From: Vitrella brassicaformis CCMP3155
Taxonomy: Eukaryota > Protista > Chromerida
Direction: 5' to 3'
Length of the DNA stretch: 64,000 nt
Assembly: GCA_001179505.1 (NCBI GenBank)
Contig: CDMY01000275.1
Location: forward strand, 62,001 to 126,000
Shown: positions 52,832 to 63,000 of the stretch, one piece after another
Layout of the letters: the number at the start of each line of letters is the position of its first letter
Numbering within the stretch: position 1 is the stretch's first letter
The notes under the pieces: model-generated
What the model was told of the DNA's origin: nothing
The model's input: only the letters and a program-made list of their open reading frames with translations
Database searches by the model: none
Made by a program: the position numbers and the translations under genes

Positions 52832-53442
52832 CTGACTTGCCAGTGTGTGTGGTCTCCTTTGGTGGTCTCGTGTGCCGCTTGTCAAGCACACGCGTGTGCG
52901 CCTTTTTGTTCTGCTGCCGGTTGGTTGACCTTTGTCGTCTCCTGTATTTGGTTGAATGGACGGACGGGCAACGGATGTAGTCAGTGGTAGGGACAAAATT
53001 GGCGTCACCAACGGACGCGCATACACGTACACACATGCACTGGCAACGCAAGTGTGGCGTCAAAGAAAGAAAGAAAGAAAGAAAGAAAGTCTGGCTGAGC
53101 TCGTGCACATTCATCTCTTCAGGCACATAAGCTATCTGTACATGTCATGAATGCAGACATTCATCCATCCATCACAAGCCACAAGATGATGAGAGTCCTA
53201 CGATTTGAAGACTCATGCGTGTACCGGTCGGTCATCGGTCACCCATCCGGTCCATCCACCCACGCATCTATGCCATGACGCATTCATTATTCAAATCGCA
53301 TCTGAAGCGTCGGCCAAAAGCGGTGCGAAGCCCTCGCACATGGTTCAAAAAACTGTGGCGCGTCGCGTCGCCCACCCCCCAGAGTCGAGTTGCCTCAGGG
53401 GCGCACTGCGGCCACTGCAGCAGCTGCGATTGATTGATTGAT

Positions 53443-54803
53443 TCATACGGTGGTGAGGACGCCGACCTGGGCCCCGTTAATCATGCTGGTCTCCATCTTC
53501 TCCCGCAGGGCCAGGACGCTCTCGCGCTGGTCCTCAGGGATGGAGTCTGAGGAGAGATCAAAAAGGCCCCCGGTTGGTGTGCGCGCGGCTTGTCGTGTGT
53601 GTGTTGTCTCTTACCGATATCGACAGTCAGCGGGTCGAGCAGAGGCGTGGGGACGGTGCCGTCCTCTGCGGGCTCCTCCCACACGTCGGGCACGAACGCG
53701 GGGCCAGACACATCCACAAACGCAGGCGGGTCATACTGACACACACACACACACACACATACACACACACATACATACACATGCAGGCACGCACACAGCG
53801 GTGTTCATTCATCGATCCATCCATTGATCCATAACCCATACATACGAGTTGACTGACTCACCTCTGCCATGAGCTTGATGTTCTCAAGGAACCTGTCAAA
53901 ACAGGGTGCAGCGTAGGCGGTGAAGTCTGCAGCCTCCATGCGCTTCTGAAGCACCACAGCGCAGCACATGACAGACAACATAACATACATGATCTCTCAG
54001 TCCATCCGTCCGCCAATCGATGACCCCTGCCTGACCTCGAAATAGTCCCTCAGGTATCTGACGCCTGAAGAAAGCGCTGCGAAATCCATGCCAACCTCCT
54101 GAGTGCATAGCATAAATCAATCAATGTCAACCACGTCAGAACGAATGGATGGATCGCATCGATGGCCTGCACCACTGGCTCAGCCGTTCCTTCCTTCCGC
54201 TCATTCCTCTGCTTAGCTTACGTCATAGAGCTCGGTCATGTAGTCGAGCACCTCCCGCCGCATGCAGTGGACAATCCCCGCCGCAATGCCGTACTGCAGC
54301 ACCCGCAGGAAGGTCCCCAGGTCCTCAGAAATCATCTGACCCACACCGCCGTCGTCCCGCGCGAGCCCATACGAGTCCACCACATGCTTCCTGGCCTCCT
54401 CGAGCGCAGCGTCCCTCTCGTCAAAGATGACCTGGGCCGCCTGCTCCCCCGGCAGCAGACCCTTGTTGGTCTCCAGCTCGAGGGGATACACATACCGCTG
54501 ACTCGAGTCAGCGCCGCGCAACAGGTAGATGATGTTGCCAAAGCGCAGCTCTGCGTCGTCGAAGAGGCACTTCTGGCCTCGCAGGAAGCCCTTGAGTGCG
54601 GCGCCGTCGGGGCTGCTGTTGGCATTCATCCGCAGACCGTGGGATCTGGGGTGAGCGGATGCAGGCCGATAGAGCAGAGGCGGTGATGATGACCGGAGAG
54701 CGAAGGCTGACAGGGGAGAGGGCAGCAACGCCAGGGAGAGCAACAAGACAACCATGGAGGCAGCGAGAAACCGCCTTGCAGGGCAGATCTGAAGAGAGCT
54801 CAT
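53443..54803 (-). CDS. Allophycocyanin-alpha-like (ApcA/ApcD-like) phycobiliprotein homologue with bipartite plastid presequence; 5 exons, about 317 aa
   Basis: Exons 54803-54222, 54098-54036, 53945-53862, 53735-53615 and 53546-53443 total 954 nt in frame. ADSSQRYVYPLELETNK and EDLGTFLRVLQYGIAAG…TELYDEVG…SGVRYLR…AAPCFD match the recalled APC-alpha pattern. Presequence MVVLLLSLALLPSPLSA|FALRSSS. Confidence 0.8.
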
Positions 54804-55025
54804 CTTCCCTGCACAAGCACAAGCTCCCGCCTGGCTCTTTGTCAGCTTCTTCCCTCCTGAATCTCGTCAAGTCTAAGCTCGCAAATGTGCAACAGCTCGC
54901 CCAAACAGCAAAATCTGTTTGCAGCATAAGATGACCCAACGCGAGGCCGTCAAGACAGCAAGAAGCAGCGGGCGTGAGTCAGGCAGACAGTAGAAAGATC
55001 CGGCGAGCTGCAGTAGAAGGGCAAG

Positions 55026-58000
55026 ATGTCCACGAAGCGCGTGACGCTCGTGGTCGGAAACAGCACAAGGTGAGCCCAACGCCACAAGCCGTACACAAGG
55101 CTCAACGAAATCACGCGATGAATCTTGCTGTCTGGCGTGCTGTGCTGTGGTTGTGGTTGTGCCCCCTTCCAGTGTTGACTTCTATCGGCATCTGCACACG
55201 CTGCACCATGCCACGTGGACACTCATACCCGCTGAAAGGATTGGTAAGCCAGGCTGGGCGAACTGCACACACTGCTGGGTGGGTGCATCTGCCATGTGTT
55301 GTGTTGTGTTGTGTTGCCTTGCCTTGTGGTCAGCGGCAAAGCATTCGATGACCTGCAGCGCTGAGGGGACCGCACCCCTCTCTGCGCTGTCGGGAAAGGT
55401 AACTAGAGAGATATCAGCACAACCAGTGGCAGCCAGCACGAATGAGATAGATGGATTCCTATTGTTTATTATGTGGTGTGTTGATCGTACTGGCTGCAGC
55501 TTCAGTACTCGTGTGTGCTTCACGGCATTGAGTATGTGGTGGGGGTGTCCTTCGGCGTCCCCGTACTCGGAGATCGAAAGTCAGTCAGTCAAGCCATCGA
55601 TAGGACACACATCGATATATTCCTTGTGGACCTTCCTGCGCCTTGGTGTGTGTGTGTGTGTGTTATAGGGAGAAGGCCTTTCTGGCGTCATCGCCGAACG
55701 TCAAGGAGGCCGGCCTGCCGCCCGCCGCGGTGCTCTTCATACTCAGTGCATACGCTGACAAGAGAGACCCCAGCAGGGTCAGTGAGGGGGGGCGGGCAGA
55801 CGCCGGTGAAATGGCTCTCTGCATGGCTCTGCCTCTGTGCTGTCGTGCACGTTGTCATGTGCAGCACCACATCACGATTGCCGAAACACGGGAGGGATCT
55901 GAATACATAAAGAGTGAGCCAAGAAGCCAGTTGGTTGATCCGTCCGATGGATACGCACATTCATCGTGCCGCGTGTGTTGCCATCCATCCATCCAGAGCT
56001 GAGGGATGATAGCGTGACTATGGCCCGCCAGCCCGCCTACCGCATCAATCGCCCCGGCCGGAAGGACGCCGTGGTGTCGCATCCCTCCGACACGCAGAGG
56101 AGCAGCTTCGTCCCCAACATCAAGAACCACAACTGGAAGAAGCAGCTGCGGCGGGCGCACAGATCCATCATGATTCGCATCGTCAACCTCACCAGGTGGG
56201 GGGGTTGGTGTGCAGGCAGCTGAGCTGTAGACTGATGGGCTGTGTGTTGGTTATTATATATTATGTGCCTGCAGGAATGTGATGCGTTTGATGTATAAGG
56301 ATGGGTCTGACTTGGATCGGAGGCCGCAAATGTTCCTCGAGGACGGCGTGTGGGTCGAGGTGGGTCAGCCGCCGCCAGGCAGACAGACAGCATTATTTGA
56401 CGCGCAAGCACAGATCCTTGGTTGTGTGTGTGTTCAGTACCCCCGTGACGAGATATGTCCGATGGGCTGCAGCGAATTCGGTGGGTGGGCGGGCGATGGA
56501 TGACAGGGATTAAGATTGCAGCCCGTCACTTGTGCGCTCTTTATGGCTTGATTGGTGTGATGCAGGTGCGCGCAGTCGTGGCTTTATGCAGGGGACGCAG
56601 GGCAAGGTCTACTACACCATGCCCGGACACCCTGGGTATGTCTGTCTGTCTGTATGTCACACACACACACATGAAGGCTCGATCGTCACACCGCACTGAC
56701 AGTATGGATGGATGGATGGCTGCCAGTTGGATCATATTTTCCTGGGAGCAGCCGTACGTGGGTGTCTTCAAGAGCCAGGGGGGACACTCCACCAACAAAT
56801 TCAGCGTCCAGACACACACTGGTAAGCAAGCCAAGTCAGGTGGCACCCCGGCGCACCGCAGCCAAGCCACGATGCGATGCCATGCACAGCACAGAGTGTG
56901 CGTGTGACCATCCATCGATGCACCCCATCGCCCTGCCTGCCTGCGTATGTATGTGTCAGATCGGTTCAACGAGTGTACGCTGCTCTTCCACGTACTCGAC
57001 CCAATGAAACCGCCGCCCCTCCGGGTAATCTAATCACACACACATAGACAGACCACATCCACCCACCACCAGATGAATCGACCTCTTCGCCTCCCTCTCT
57101 CCCTCTCTCTCGCTGTGCTGTCTCAGATCATTTCTGCCAAGGCTGTTCACAGCCACAACGGCGAGCAGTACGACCGTCACCGCCGCGGTCCGCCCAAAGG
57201 GGACGACTGCACCACCCATGTGAGCGCGGCCGTCAAGTGCATCAAGGGCAGCACCAGGGCCTCCATGGAGAGCATGGCCATGGGCACCGACACGGATGAC
57301 GGAAGCGGCGAGATGGTCCTCGAACTCACAAACCCCAGAAGCTTCTTCGGTAGGCAAGGAGGAAGCAGAGCAGACACACGACAGCCAGACACGGATCGCC
57401 GTTGTTTGTGCCTGCCTGTGTGTGTGTGTCAGCATCGCTCAACACGGGCCGCAAGTGGTACAACCCCGCGAGCTGGCTCTTCATCGAGTGGCAGATAGGG
57501 TGCGAGCGGTTCTCATCCATCTGGCCCTCGGAGGACCGCGTCCGCATCAAGCCGTCACTGGTGGGCGGGGGCGCCCTGGGCCGCCAGCAGGGGGAGGAGA
57601 ACTGCGTCATCCTCGACGCAGAGGTCGTCCCCAACTGGCAGTGGTACCCAGAGAGACTACTGCTGCTCAATGGGCCGGGGGCGGCTGGGGGTGGGGGGCC
57701 GTCGACGGGCGGCAAGAAGGCCGGCGGCGAGAGGGGAGGCGGTCGTGGGGCGAGTAGGATGTTTAGCGGGAGTGCTGGGGGCCGGAGCGACCATGAGGGC
57801 GCGTCTCAGGAGCAGCTGCTGGAGGCCGTTGTGTCGTGTCTGCAGCTGCTGAGCGAGGGGCTGCAGCCTGTCGTCACACAACACATGAAGAACAAGTATG
57901 TCGTGAGTGGATGGATGGATGGATGGGCCACGCACACACCTGGCTGGCAGAGAGGGAGGACAGATGTGCTTCGTTGTGTTGCCTTTATCAGGTTTGGTGA

Positions 58001-60060: not shown

Positions 60061-63000
60061 TCACAATGAGAACCCCTGTGGCGGGATGGATGTGTCCAGG
60101 AAGCAGATCATCTCCGCCAACACGCTCTTGGGCACCAGCACCCTCAACCTCTTCCACACAGAATCATTAAACAGCTCAAACGACCTCTGCACCAGCTTCT
60201 CCAGCCCCTGCTGCATCCGAACCTGACACAAACCAGCAGAGAGAGACGTGACGTGCCATTCTCGATGCCCGCCCCGCACGATGGATGCGATCGATGCGAC
60301 AGATAGCCTGTTAGTTAGCTACCTGCAGCTGTGTTCTCAGTGTCTCCTTGAAGATGGTCACGAGCAGCTGGAGCAGCAGCTGTGAGAGGGCGGAGGTGCA
60401 CGTGAGCTGCACCTCCACACTGGGGCGGTCGATCGTCAGTGACCGCAGACGGAGACCCTGTTCAACAGAGAACGACACGAACGCTGTGGCGGACACGTCG
60501 CTCACCTACATCACATCCAGCCAGCCAATGGCACCACACCACACCACACCCTGTCTGTCTGTCTGTCTGTCTGTCGGCACACGTGCGGTGCGAGTGAGCT
60601 CCGTGCACACAACACACATACCTGCACGACTGACGCCCCCTGCTCCTGCAGCGGCAACTTGACGAAGGAGGCCACCCAGTTGTGCCGCAGACTGCCACCC
60701 ACCTTCACGCAGCTCACGCGGCAGTAACAGCTGCGGCTGCTGCTGGCCTTGTTCTCATCAGCCGGTGCTGCTGGTGGACCGTCCGATGCAGTCTGCCCCT
60801 CTCGACTCGCTGGCCCATCGCGGGGCCCACTTGAAGGTAGGGAAGGCTCCTCGCTGGGCTGGGTGCGTGTTTCCGGTCTGTTTGGCTGCGGCTGACGTGC
60901 GGCGAGCGCTGATGCAGCTGCTGGTGGGTGCTCGTACCACGCCTTTCCCACCGACTGCACACGCACCTGGCAGTCTTTGGTGGTGAAACTCGTCACACGC
61001 AGGTCACTCAGACGATACCTGACAGATGAATGAATGACGCAACGCAACACGGAGAACCAATCATGCATGCCATGGACAAACAAGTATATATGAGCCCTTG
61101 AGTTTGCTGACTCAGGTACCTGAGCTGGTCGGTCTCGCCGTCTATGGGCGGCATCCGCATTTCCTCGAGCTTCCTTCGAGCGATCCGCAGGAGCGTCGAC
61201 TCATCCCCCTCACCATCTGCTGCATCCCCTTCGCCGACCGGCGCGCTGAGAGTGCGGCTGATGGCGCCACTCTCCTGCCGCCTCACGATCGGGCTGGCGA
61301 TGTAGCCGTTCATCCCCGGGCTCGCTGTGTCTGTGTGTGTGTGGCTGTCGCTCTCTGATTGAGGCGGCTTGGATGAGATCGACAGCGTGAGGGCCTCCAG
61401 GATCCTCCGGAGGCAGACGACGGCCAGCTGCGCCACATCACGCTTGGCCGCCACATCGTCCTTGACTGGCGACGACACCTGTCCGTCCGAGTCTGAAGAG
61501 ACGGACAGAGGCAAAGACGTCCATGTCGATGGATGGATGGATGGACCTAAGCGTTGCTTGAGCTGACTGACCCGACCCACCTGGCGCAAAGGGGTCGGGC
61601 GGCAGGGGGTGGAATGGTGGTCCATGGCTGCTCCACGCGTCCCTCACGTAGCACCGCAGCACGTCCCGCACACAGCGCAGGAAGCATATTGCCAGCGACG
61701 GACTCTCACACACGTAAGAGTGGGGGCCGTCGGTCTCGAACGCGAAGTCGACAGGGCCATTGGACGGGGAGGGTGTGTGCTGCAGCACCGGGGGGTGGCC
61801 GGCGAAGGCGAGAGTGGAGAATAGACGGAGATAGTCCGATAAGGAAATGAAGACAGGTCCGGCGGGGGGCGAAGCGCATGACGTCGGGGCGGACATGCTC
61901 GAGGTGAAAGCCGGCCCACGCAGTGAATGGTATATCTGAGGGAAGAAGACAGCACACACAAATGAGTCGAGTCAGTCTCTTGTGCCACTGACTATCCCGA
62001 GCCCGCCAGGCCAGGGTACTGTACCTGGAAGTGGGCGTAGCAGTGGCACATTGAAGCAAACGCAATTTGGAAGAACGGCGGCGCACTCCCACTCGACAGT
62101 AGCAGATGACTCCCGGGCGGCGGAGGGCCGCTCATCCCACGATCACTCGCACAGTCATCTTCGCGGAATATCGACGACACGAGATGGGCCAGCAGCCAAC
62201 ACACGTCATACCCGCACTCGCCCCACGCCTCCGCGAGCGCATGAGTGACCAGCACCTCAGTGGACGCGCTGCAATCCGCATCCTGCTGCCGAAGGTTGAG
62301 CAGTGCAATGAAGCGGCACGCAAAGGCCATGAATGCGTTGCTGAAGACGAAGGCCAGGCCGAGCTGAACGACGGGTGAGGGGTCATTGCTCATGGCCATT
62401 CCCTCCTCCCGCGGCACCACGGTATCCCGATCTCGATCAGCGTCACGCGCCAACTCGGCAAAGAACGACTGAAACAGCACTCGAGCCTGGAGCAACACAC
62501 CACAAGATATATGCACAAAGCGGCCGTCCGTAAGGCACACGCAGGCAGTGTGCTGGTTGGGCTGGTCGACCAGGTAGAGAGCTTCCGCAGCCATGACGAC
62601 CGAGACTTCTGGCGGGTCGGGAAGCGAGGGGCAGGGCGAAGTCGCATCCACAGGTGTCCACAGAGTTTGGACGAGCAGCCGCTGCAGCAGGGGCAGGGGG
62701 GCTGGGGGATTGACCAGCGCCACACCGAGAGGCGTCCGGATGTAGTCAACCGCCGAACGGAAGAATGACAACAGCAGCTGACAAGAGGACAGCCAGACGA
62801 CAGAGAAGTGTCGACCACCAAAATCTATCCTTCATGCCGACCTTTCTGTCACCGTCTTGTTGCCTGCCTACCTTCCATTCGGCGTGCGAGAGGGCTGCGA
62901 GCGGTGGGAGGGCTCGCCTACCGACTGGCCATGCCAGTGCACCATACACATGGCCAGTCAGCCACTTCCAGAACCTGCCCCGCTCAGGCTCCCTGCCCGC

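Follow-up and report, generated by a model that had tools for sequence, protein, structure and literature searches.

The stretch of DNA analysed here (the window; 64,000 nucleotides, positions 62,001 to 126,000 of contig CDMY01000275.1, assembly GCA_001179505.1) comes from the photosynthetic chromerid Vitrella brassicaformis CCMP3155 and carries a five-exon gene for a phycobiliprotein-like protein (Table 1). The accepted role of phycobiliproteins is that of antenna pigments in cyanobacteria, red algae, glaucophytes and cryptophytes. An earlier note, made from the letters of the window alone, had described the product as a nuclear-encoded, plastid-targeted, allophycocyanin-like protein, and had explained it as a phycobilisome-core gene transferred by endosymbiosis and kept for a new plastid function. 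The gene model has a coding sequence of 954 nt and a product of 317 aa, in which all of the peptide strings quoted in that note are present. The borders of all four introns are GT..AG.

The public V. brassicaformis CCMP3155 protein P0001 (301 aa, encoded on a 558-kb scaffold) is identical to residues 17–317 of the model, and therefore both the organism and the splice pattern are settled. Transcript contigs from four public runs match the window with zero mismatches and skip exactly positions 53547–53614, 53946–54035 and 54098/9–54221, which confirmed that the gene, nuclear as proposed, is spliced and expressed. The same contigs are consistent with the fourth intron, given seven masked bases of a CA repeat: the seven letters of the record between the contig pieces 53615–53728 and 53862–53945 are 53729–53735, at the edge of exon 4. 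The contigs extend upstream to 54833, hence the first ATG (54803) lies within the mRNA, and the 3′ untranslated region (UTR) reaches at least 53200. The G+C content of the neighbourhood is even, at 0.55–0.59.

Table 1. Coordinates in the window of the phycobiliprotein-like gene and of the segments of its product.
Feature	Coordinates	Strand	Basis or remarks
Whole coding region (317 aa)	53443..54803	minus	stop codon 53443–53445; public protein and spliced contigs
Exon 1 (leader, N-terminal extension, bulk of globin-like domain)	54222..54803	minus	contig joint 54097/8 to 54221/2
Exon 2	54036..54098	minus	contig joints 53945/54036 and 54097/54221
Exon 3	53862..53945	minus	gene model and transcript contigs
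Exon 4	53615..53735	minus	final 7 bases inside masked CA repeat
Exon 5 and stop codon	53443..53546	minus	contig joint 53546/53615
Signal peptide, residues 1–33, predicted cleavage SPLSA/F	54705..54803	minus	Arg-Arg n-region and hydrophobic core, by inspection
Transit-peptide-like stretch, residues 34–64	54612..54704	minus	S/T- and R-rich, composition
Family-specific N-terminal extension, residues 65–96	54516..54611	minus	helix AALKGFLRGQK, then CLFDD...GNIIYLLR
PF00502 globin-like domain, residues 97–235, exons 1–3	53886..54515	minus	Pfam, Foldseek, VIA-align
Former chromophore site, residues 158–172 (ISEDLGTFLRVLQYG)	54288..54332	minus	clade column counts, HMMER alignments
Clade-specific C-terminal extension, residues 243–317	53446..53864	minus	motif WE.P.D/E..T.P.PLL.D (53619–53684) and terminal helix

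The match of the Vitrella protein to PF00502 has an E value of 7.4e-13 and scores 49.2 bits, where the gathering score is 22.2; it covers profile positions 5–152 of 155. The protein of Chromera scores 33.6 bits. When sequences of solved structures were compared with a profile built from these two species, the best matches were all ApcA chains, which aligned at full length with an E value of 1.4e-7. ApcD chains gave far weaker values of 5e-3 to 8e-2, and phycocyanin and beta subunits were also far weaker. The protein is thus allophycocyanin-alpha-like as first described, with ApcA the nearest of the canonical classes, whereas the likeness to ApcD that the earlier note had seen was not borne out. 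The NCBIfam equivalog model for ApcA (NF058521) gave 26.3 bits against a cut-off of 270; hence the protein is ApcA-like yet not an ApcA.

An AlphaFold 2 model of the Vitrella protein, built on 14 family members, has a core with a predicted local distance difference test score (pLDDT) above 90. The first 50 Foldseek matches in the PDB are all phycobiliproteins at probability 1.0, led by ApcA, and VIA-align superimposed model residues 66–223 on chain residues 1–162 with Z scores of 13–14.3. The aligned part of the model comprises the globin-like core and the N-terminal X-Y hairpin, i.e. the predicted fold is that of the superfamily. The profile and structure comparisons proposed at the outset thus both pointed the same way, and the gene product is a true phycobiliprotein-fold protein.

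The domain is flanked by two extensions. In the N-terminal one a helix is predicted at P0001 positions 49–59; among the closest relatives (clade 1, below), R59 and D67 never vary and H61 hardly does, Vitrella having Gln in its place. The C-terminal extension has an invariant E247 in the alignment and a predicted helix at P0001 positions 272–296. Its motif has pLDDT values of 57–70 and is probably disordered, judging from this low-confidence region of the model.

Relatives were collected by an exhaustive HMMER search of 1.84 billion representative proteins with the Vitrella and Chromera profile. This retrieved 52 proteins, none of which is a canonical 160-aa subunit, and names and tree sort the relatives into three clades. 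Clade 1 (support 100/100) contains Vitrella, Chromera, a fragment from Piridium and non-photosynthetic apicomplexans, namely Selenidium pygospionis, Siedleckia nematoides, Lankesteria (a fragment), Rhytidocystis pertsovi and Cardiosporidium cionae, together with the coccidia Cyclospora cayetanensis, Eimeria maxima, Cystoisospora suis, Hammondia and Toxoplasma gondii (TGME49_222270). Individually, 9 of the 14 clade 1 members match PF00502. Every full-length member has a long leader and a C-terminal extension with WE.P.DPRT.PLLVD. The Lankesteria metandrocarpae transcript (P0021) and the Piridium sociabile transcript (P0013) are both partial; Piridium is a non-photosynthetic relative of Vitrella. 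Because the branching within the clade roughly follows the species tree, with chromerids outside the apicomplexans and coccidia monophyletic, the sequences argue for vertical inheritance from the common ancestor of chromerids and apicomplexans.

Clade 2 consists of proteins of 170–250 aa and is sister to clade 1 (100/99). Its named members come from transcriptomes of the red algae Rhodosorus and Erythrolobus and from the ochrophyte Phaeothamnion, which lies nearest to clade 1 (93/64); orthologues in Chromera and relatives in ochrophytes were among those that the earlier note had suggested looking for. One clade 2 member is found on a 66-kb contig beside genes for Isy1, Ras and Mo25 and is therefore nuclear-encoded. 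Clade 3 combines proteins from eukaryotic contigs that have transit-peptide-like N-termini (in one case with a cyclin gene adjoining) with a cyanobacterial group. The contigs of the nuclear-encoded relatives P0023 and P0050 carry eukaryotic nuclear genes. In a scan with one genome per species, the cyanobacterial group was present in 196 genomes, including Oscillatoria, Microcoleus, Moorena, Nostoc and Calothrix.

Other searches added little. A word-indexed protein search with exon 1 only returned just Vitrella and Chromera, the same type of search with the 14-sequence alignment was dominated by low-complexity words from the leaders and added no relatives, and a protein-atlas look-up gave generic PF00502 leads only, below the trust level of the atlas itself. 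The 1591-aa protein P0045, with eight short profile matches (E 2e-7), consists of tandem repeats, looks like a compositional or repeat artefact rather than a relative and was left out of all alignments. Two AFDB entries, A0A5J4YMS0 (223 aa) and A0A6M3WDC0 (211 aa), resemble the model of the Toxoplasma protein better than canonical subunits do. They carry the automatic names 'Allophycocyanin alpha-B chain' and 'Allophycocyanin gamma subunit', but possibly belong to the non-canonical branch as well, in which case these names mislead.

The residues of the former chromophore site were counted by clade in ApcA numbering, using 20 canonical, 12 clade 3, 14 clade 1 and 20 clade 2 sequences. Position 81 is Cys in 20/20 canonical and 12/12 clade 3 proteins, and in none of the 14 clade 1 or 20 clade 2 proteins, where it is replaced by Leu, Ile or Phe (clade 1) and mostly by Leu, Val or Phe (clade 2). 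Arg at position 83 is kept in the canonical and clade 3 proteins and lost in clades 1 and 2, with Glu, Leu or Phe instead in clade 1. Position 84 is Asp in the canonical and clade 3 proteins, Asp (6) or Glu (8) in clade 1 and Asp (16) or Asn (4) in clade 2. The Vitrella protein itself has Ile at the position of the bilin Cys and Glu at that of the Arg, and keeps the Asp and the equivalents of Arg90 and Tyr94. Thus, as far as the aligned residues tell, the thioether Cys and the propionate-binding Arg have been lost from clades 1 and 2. From the C-x-R-D motif with Cys81/84, on which covalent attachment of a bilin depends, only the acidic residue remains, and the former bilin cleft has become more hydrophobic in clade 1 (Cys to Leu/Ile/Phe and Arg to Glu/Leu/Phe).

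In clade 1, Asp12, Arg90 and Tyr94 are as invariant as in the canonical subunits, and the alpha-type Arg16 is likewise kept. In phycobiliproteins, Asp12/13 pairs with Arg90/93 in the salt bridges of the alpha/beta protomer, and retention of the Asp12/Arg90 equivalents suggests, at the level of sequence, that an alpha/beta-type mode of pairing survives. No linker proteins are known in chromerids or apicomplexans. The apicomplexan members further have a His in the motif of the N-terminal extension (R-G-H-K) and another immediately before Arg90; these positions are occupied by Gln and Leu in Vitrella.

Phylogenetic analysis was performed with IQ-TREE under a C20 mixture model on 66 sequences and 191 columns. 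The outgroups were ApcA and ApcB from metagenome contigs, together with the CpcA, CpcB/CpeB and CpeA sequences encoded on either side of the cyanobacterial members, and were checked by NCBIfam. All canonical ApcA, ApcB, CpcA, CpcB/CpeB and CpeA sequences lie behind a single branch with 100/100 support, and the three clades are all outside it; the ApcA clade (100/99) thus excludes the Vitrella protein. An extension of ~30 residues before the X helix (LS.kA.ELi..., then K-x-[LI]-F-[DS]) is common to the three clades and absent from ApcA, ApcB and CpcA.

These data bear on the origin proposed in the earlier note, i.e. that an apcA or apcD gene of the phycobilisome core left the plastid genome of a red alga for the nucleus, where it survives as a relic. 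ApcA chains are indeed the top matches among solved structures and in NCBIfam, and a tree in which the three non-canonical groups together are forced with ApcA was not rejected (approximately unbiased (AU) test, p 0.45). However, the equivalog score falls far below its cut-off (26 against 270 bits), ApcD scores far worse than ApcA, and the canonical subunits form a 100/100 group without the Vitrella protein. Forcing clades 1 and 2 together with ApcA while leaving out clade 3, which holds the cyanobacterial paralogues, costs 29.7 log-likelihood units and was rejected (AU p 0.012). Cyanobacterial paralogues and nuclear ones of red algae, moreover, have the N-terminal extension too, which dates the separation from ApcA to before the origin of plastids. 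Transfer of a phycobilisome-core gene is hence very improbable. Tree, AU test and shared extension instead place the Vitrella protein, on sequence evidence, in an old allophycocyanin-like side branch that was already present in cyanobacteria.

The surroundings of the cyanobacterial members were examined at 80 loci (e.g. L037:8178-8837, L062:6149-6736, L067:4862-5599 and L064:13349-14158). A HEAT_PBS lyase-like gene adjoins in 43 of these and a CpeS-type lyase gene in 30, a ferredoxin-dependent bilin reductase is encoded in 20 and a rod linker in 19, and 28 loci have cpcBA or cpeBA no more than 10 kb away. Given that C-W-R-D is kept and that lyases and a bilin reductase adjoin, the cyanobacterial members most likely carry a bilin. 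Going by its title, the work of Montgomery et al. 2004 reportedly describes the published Apl (AplA) proteins as phycobiliproteins that do not serve as a traditional antenna. The cyanobacterial loci lie in a rod/phycoerythrin gene region, and this matches the position described for aplA, which in marine Synechococcus lies in the rod gene region according to a passage of a preprint that cites Montgomery et al. 2004 (bioRxiv 10.1101/2021.06.21.449213). The cyanobacterial clade is therefore tentatively equated with the Apl proteins.

The Vitrella protein is placed in this Apl-like branch by the N-terminal extension common to the clades and by its position in the tree with the cyanobacterial paralogues. 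The cyanobacterial proteins are allophycocyanin-like by profile scores, as is the Vitrella protein, and differ from it in that they retain the chromophore motif among bilin-processing genes. The branch would have arisen in cyanobacteria, where its members bear the bilin Cys and are encoded among lyase, reductase and rod genes; from there it would have reached the red-algal nucleus and, along with the red-derived plastid, the forebear that chromerids and apicomplexans share. Both the Cys of the thioether bond and the Arg that binds the propionate were lost in the chromerid/apicomplexan clade and in its red-algal/ochrophyte sister clade. That the Vitrella protein is a nuclear-encoded, plastid-imported member of a non-canonical, Apl-like branch with red-lineage descent is considered highly probable. 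The suggestion that the gene marks plastid ancestry is upheld, as the nearest relatives (red algae and Phaeothamnion) point to the red lineage.

The likeness to the nearest relatives is graded. The red-algal (Rhodosorus, Erythrolobus) and Phaeothamnion proteins share with the Vitrella protein R-x-H-K-x-[LI]-F in the N-terminal extension, a nuclear location, transit-peptide-like N-termini and the absence of the bilin Cys, but they are shorter (170–250 aa), do not have the C-terminal WE.P.DPRT.PLLVD extension and have lost the alpha-type Arg16. ApcA shares with the Vitrella protein the globin-like fold with the X-Y hairpin (Z 13–14), the best full-length sequence match, the alpha-type N-terminal motif D-x3-R-Y, Arg90 and Tyr94. 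The Vitrella protein, in contrast, is without the Cys81 thioether site and Arg83, has N- and C-terminal extensions of ~30 and ~75 aa, respectively, is nuclear-encoded with a bipartite leader outside the canonical clade, and belongs to a clade of organisms that have no phycobilisomes and in part no photosynthesis.

A signal peptide followed by a transit peptide with an aromatic residue at +1 is the known pattern for proteins of complex red-derived plastids, and by inspection the Vitrella protein has such a bipartite leader. The signal peptide has an Arg-Arg n-region and a hydrophobic core (Kyte-Doolittle 2.3–2.7 over residues 13–29). The 31 residues that follow (34–64) include 7 S/T and 4 R/K and no D/E, have low pLDDT and are unconserved across orthologues; the description of a signal peptide ending in SA before F and of a Ser/Arg-rich transit peptide is thus supported. 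An aromatic residue (F or Y) stands directly after the hydrophobic segment in 12 of the 14 aligned orthologues, as judged by inspection. In the Chromera transcript contig L001, an upstream in-frame Met gives MTRPLSLFCLASFLSPATA followed by FLLRPF, with a putative cleavage site SPATA/F. The public Chromera model P0002 begins within the mature part, and the whole leader is encoded by that contig (188–295). The public Vitrella model begins at Met17 of the open reading frame (54803–54755 affected), so that the charged n-region of the signal peptide is missing from it.

The Toxoplasma orthologue provides data on localisation. The chromerid profile matches TGME49_222270 across the whole domain with an E value of 1e-19 (HMMER), although this protein alone is not recognised by Pfam or NCBIfam. 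Its AlphaFold model (pLDDT 85, predicted template-modelling score 0.75) matches phycobiliproteins only, over chain residues 1–162, with Z scores of 10.6–11.7. N- and C-terminal motifs and predicted fold are the same as in the Vitrella protein; the differences are a longer leader and three substitutions, in that the Cys of the extension motif is Ser and the Gln and Leu of Vitrella are both His. In hyperLOPIT, this 'hypothetical protein' was detected in three of three experiments and assigned to the apicoplast with probability 1 (PMC7670262 supplement). In parasites freed of the apicoplast, the protein is reduced about 4-fold (log2 −1.9 to −2.1, Q 6e-5 to 0.05) with no change in the counts of its mRNA (PMC11873192 supplement). 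The CRISPR fitness score is −0.76, compared with about −5 for neighbouring essential apicoplast proteins (PMC7670262 supplement). In a TurboID data set, TGME49_222270 is present at few counts and without significance, and a literature search by gene identifier found no mention of it in paper texts.

Taken with its leader, the apicoplast location of the orthologue makes it likely that the Vitrella protein is plastid-targeted. The protein is neither a covalent biliprotein nor an antenna, and since it is kept in non-photosynthetic apicoplasts its job is a general plastid one; the expectation that it serves something besides light harvesting was therefore right, both by the presence of orthologues in non-photosynthetic apicomplexans and by the loss of the bilin site. 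Photosystem assembly and photoprotection, which the earlier note had listed among possible functions, fit this poorly. A part in chromerid photosynthesis (as an antenna remnant, or in photosystem assembly or photoprotection) would accord with the photosynthetic life of Vitrella and with the antenna fold of the protein, but the protein is conserved with its leader in at least ten non-photosynthetic lineages and its Toxoplasma orthologue resides in the apicoplast. Contaminant DNA, named at the outset as a finding that would overturn the interpretation, is rejected, and a decaying relic is opposed by the same observations: the gene sits on a 558-kb Vitrella scaffold of uniform G+C content, has the local intron style, and is spliced and expressed, and the branching order within the clade roughly mirrors that of the species. 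The group of explanations formed by a photosynthetic role, a contaminant or a decaying relic is accordingly given next to no weight.

As to what the general plastid job might be, the protein is tentatively proposed, from its sequence and by analogy, to be a bilin-free dimeric or oligomeric scaffold or a ligand-binding accessory factor of the plastid stroma. It would be a soluble stromal protein that pairs through the conserved Asp12/Arg90-type alpha/beta interface into a homodimer or higher oligomer. The N-terminal helix, the hydrophobic former bilin cleft and the C-terminal motif would hold a partner protein or a hydrophobic ligand, and the whole would act as an accessory factor that is largely dispensable for laboratory tachyzoites. 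Taken as a whole, i.e. with identity, origin, a non-antenna general plastid role and this mechanism, the explanation is regarded as fairly probable.

Binding of a tetrapyrrole (bilin, haem or an intermediate) without a covalent bond, by a plastid carrier, buffer or sensor, has to be weighed against the proposed scaffold or accessory factor. The fold is that of bilin binders, an acidic residue stands at the Asp84 position in 14/14 members, and the His of the N-terminal helix and the His beside Arg90 are conserved in the apicomplexan members. Asp84 of biliproteins contacts the pyrrole nitrogens. On the other hand, the bilin site has lost its Cys and its Arg, and both His residues are replaced in Vitrella. 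Chromerids have several haem oxygenase-like proteins, including active-type haem oxygenases, but within the Apicomplexa such proteins have been reported only from hematozoans, and thus none from coccidia (PMC11634067). A bilin derived from haem oxygenase is for this reason unlikely as the general ligand. The plastid of Lankesteria, in which fatty-acid synthesis is the only pathway left and a genome is seemingly absent (PMC6733595), is without the plastid haem pathway, and a fragment of the protein is present in that genus nonetheless. The tetrapyrrole role that had been put forward for the protein is thus weakened and is considered unlikely.

The Lankesteria plastid likewise weakens roles in plastid haem synthesis, isoprenoid synthesis and plastid gene expression, because it does not have these processes and the genus yet yields the protein fragment. 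This argument depends on one truncated transcript from a species other than that of PMC6733595. The same plastid directs attention to a tie with plastid fatty-acid synthesis, or with its ferredoxin/Fe-S supply, in which the protein would be an adaptor or a binder of an acyl or lipid ligand. The fatty-acid pathway is the one kept there (PMC6733595), the former bilin cleft is more hydrophobic, and the mild phenotype in tachyzoites would fit a pathway that can be bypassed. Plasmodium has this pathway, and piroplasms are without it. This connection is, however, purely correlative, drawn from that single truncated transcript of another Lankesteria species, with no domain or neighbour support, and is judged improbable. 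In broader terms, it is quite possible, if somewhat short of probable, that the chromophore-free phycobiliprotein is a conserved and unrecognised component of chromerid and apicomplexan plastids, directly descended from the phycobilisome-bearing red-algal ancestor, with a new non-photosynthetic job in the apicoplast of Toxoplasma, Eimeria and Cyclospora, either in handling haem or a hydrophobic ligand or as a fatty-acid/redox adaptor. If so, no other protein of this antenna family would yet be known to function in an organelle without photosynthesis.

Several points weigh against the explanation of the protein as a bilin-free scaffold or accessory factor of Apl-like origin. The acidic residue retained at position 84 leaves room for non-covalent tetrapyrrole binding, especially in chromerids, a prospect that, going by the residues, is put no higher than unlikely. 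The evidence for plastid localisation of the Vitrella protein is indirect, the proposed mechanism draws on conserved residues and on analogy with the alpha/beta protomer, and the cyanobacterial clade is equated with Apl proteins by description and locus rather than by sequence. The distribution given is a minimum, with hematozoan, dinoflagellate, diatom and haptophyte proteomes outside the name-based search; an AFDB cluster search with the Toxoplasma model gave no hematozoan match, in a library not built to show absence.

The domain match on the Vitrella protein is already known as an automatic annotation in public databases. In the literature searched, no description was found of a phycobiliprotein-like protein in chromerids or apicoplasts, of the clade, of the loss of its chromophore site or of the Apl-like link, and in a proteomics paper on chromerid photosystems the sole mention of phycobiliproteins is as gel markers. 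The protein would testify, at the protein level, that chromerid and apicomplexan plastids go back to a red alga with phycobilisomes, and it gives a fold to the 'hypothetical' apicoplast protein TGME49_222270, missed by Pfam and NCBIfam. The Apl-like branch, spread over cyanobacteria, red-algal nuclei and secondary red plastids, appears to have been repurposed after the chromophore site was lost. Because Toxoplasma is genetically tractable, the function of the protein is open to direct tests there. A host counterpart is absent, yet with so mild a fitness score the protein is an unpromising drug target in tachyzoites, and that score also tempers the interest for research on plastid evolution and the apicoplast.

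The gene forms a head-to-head pair with a plus-strand neighbour (ATG near 55026), whose contigs start by 54893, leaving ~60 bp (54833–54893) for a shared promoter region. A (CA)n microsatellite at 53729–53797 makes up a large part of intron 3 and reaches the last bases of exon 4, and a (GAAA)n run is located at 53064–53090 in the 3′ UTR region.

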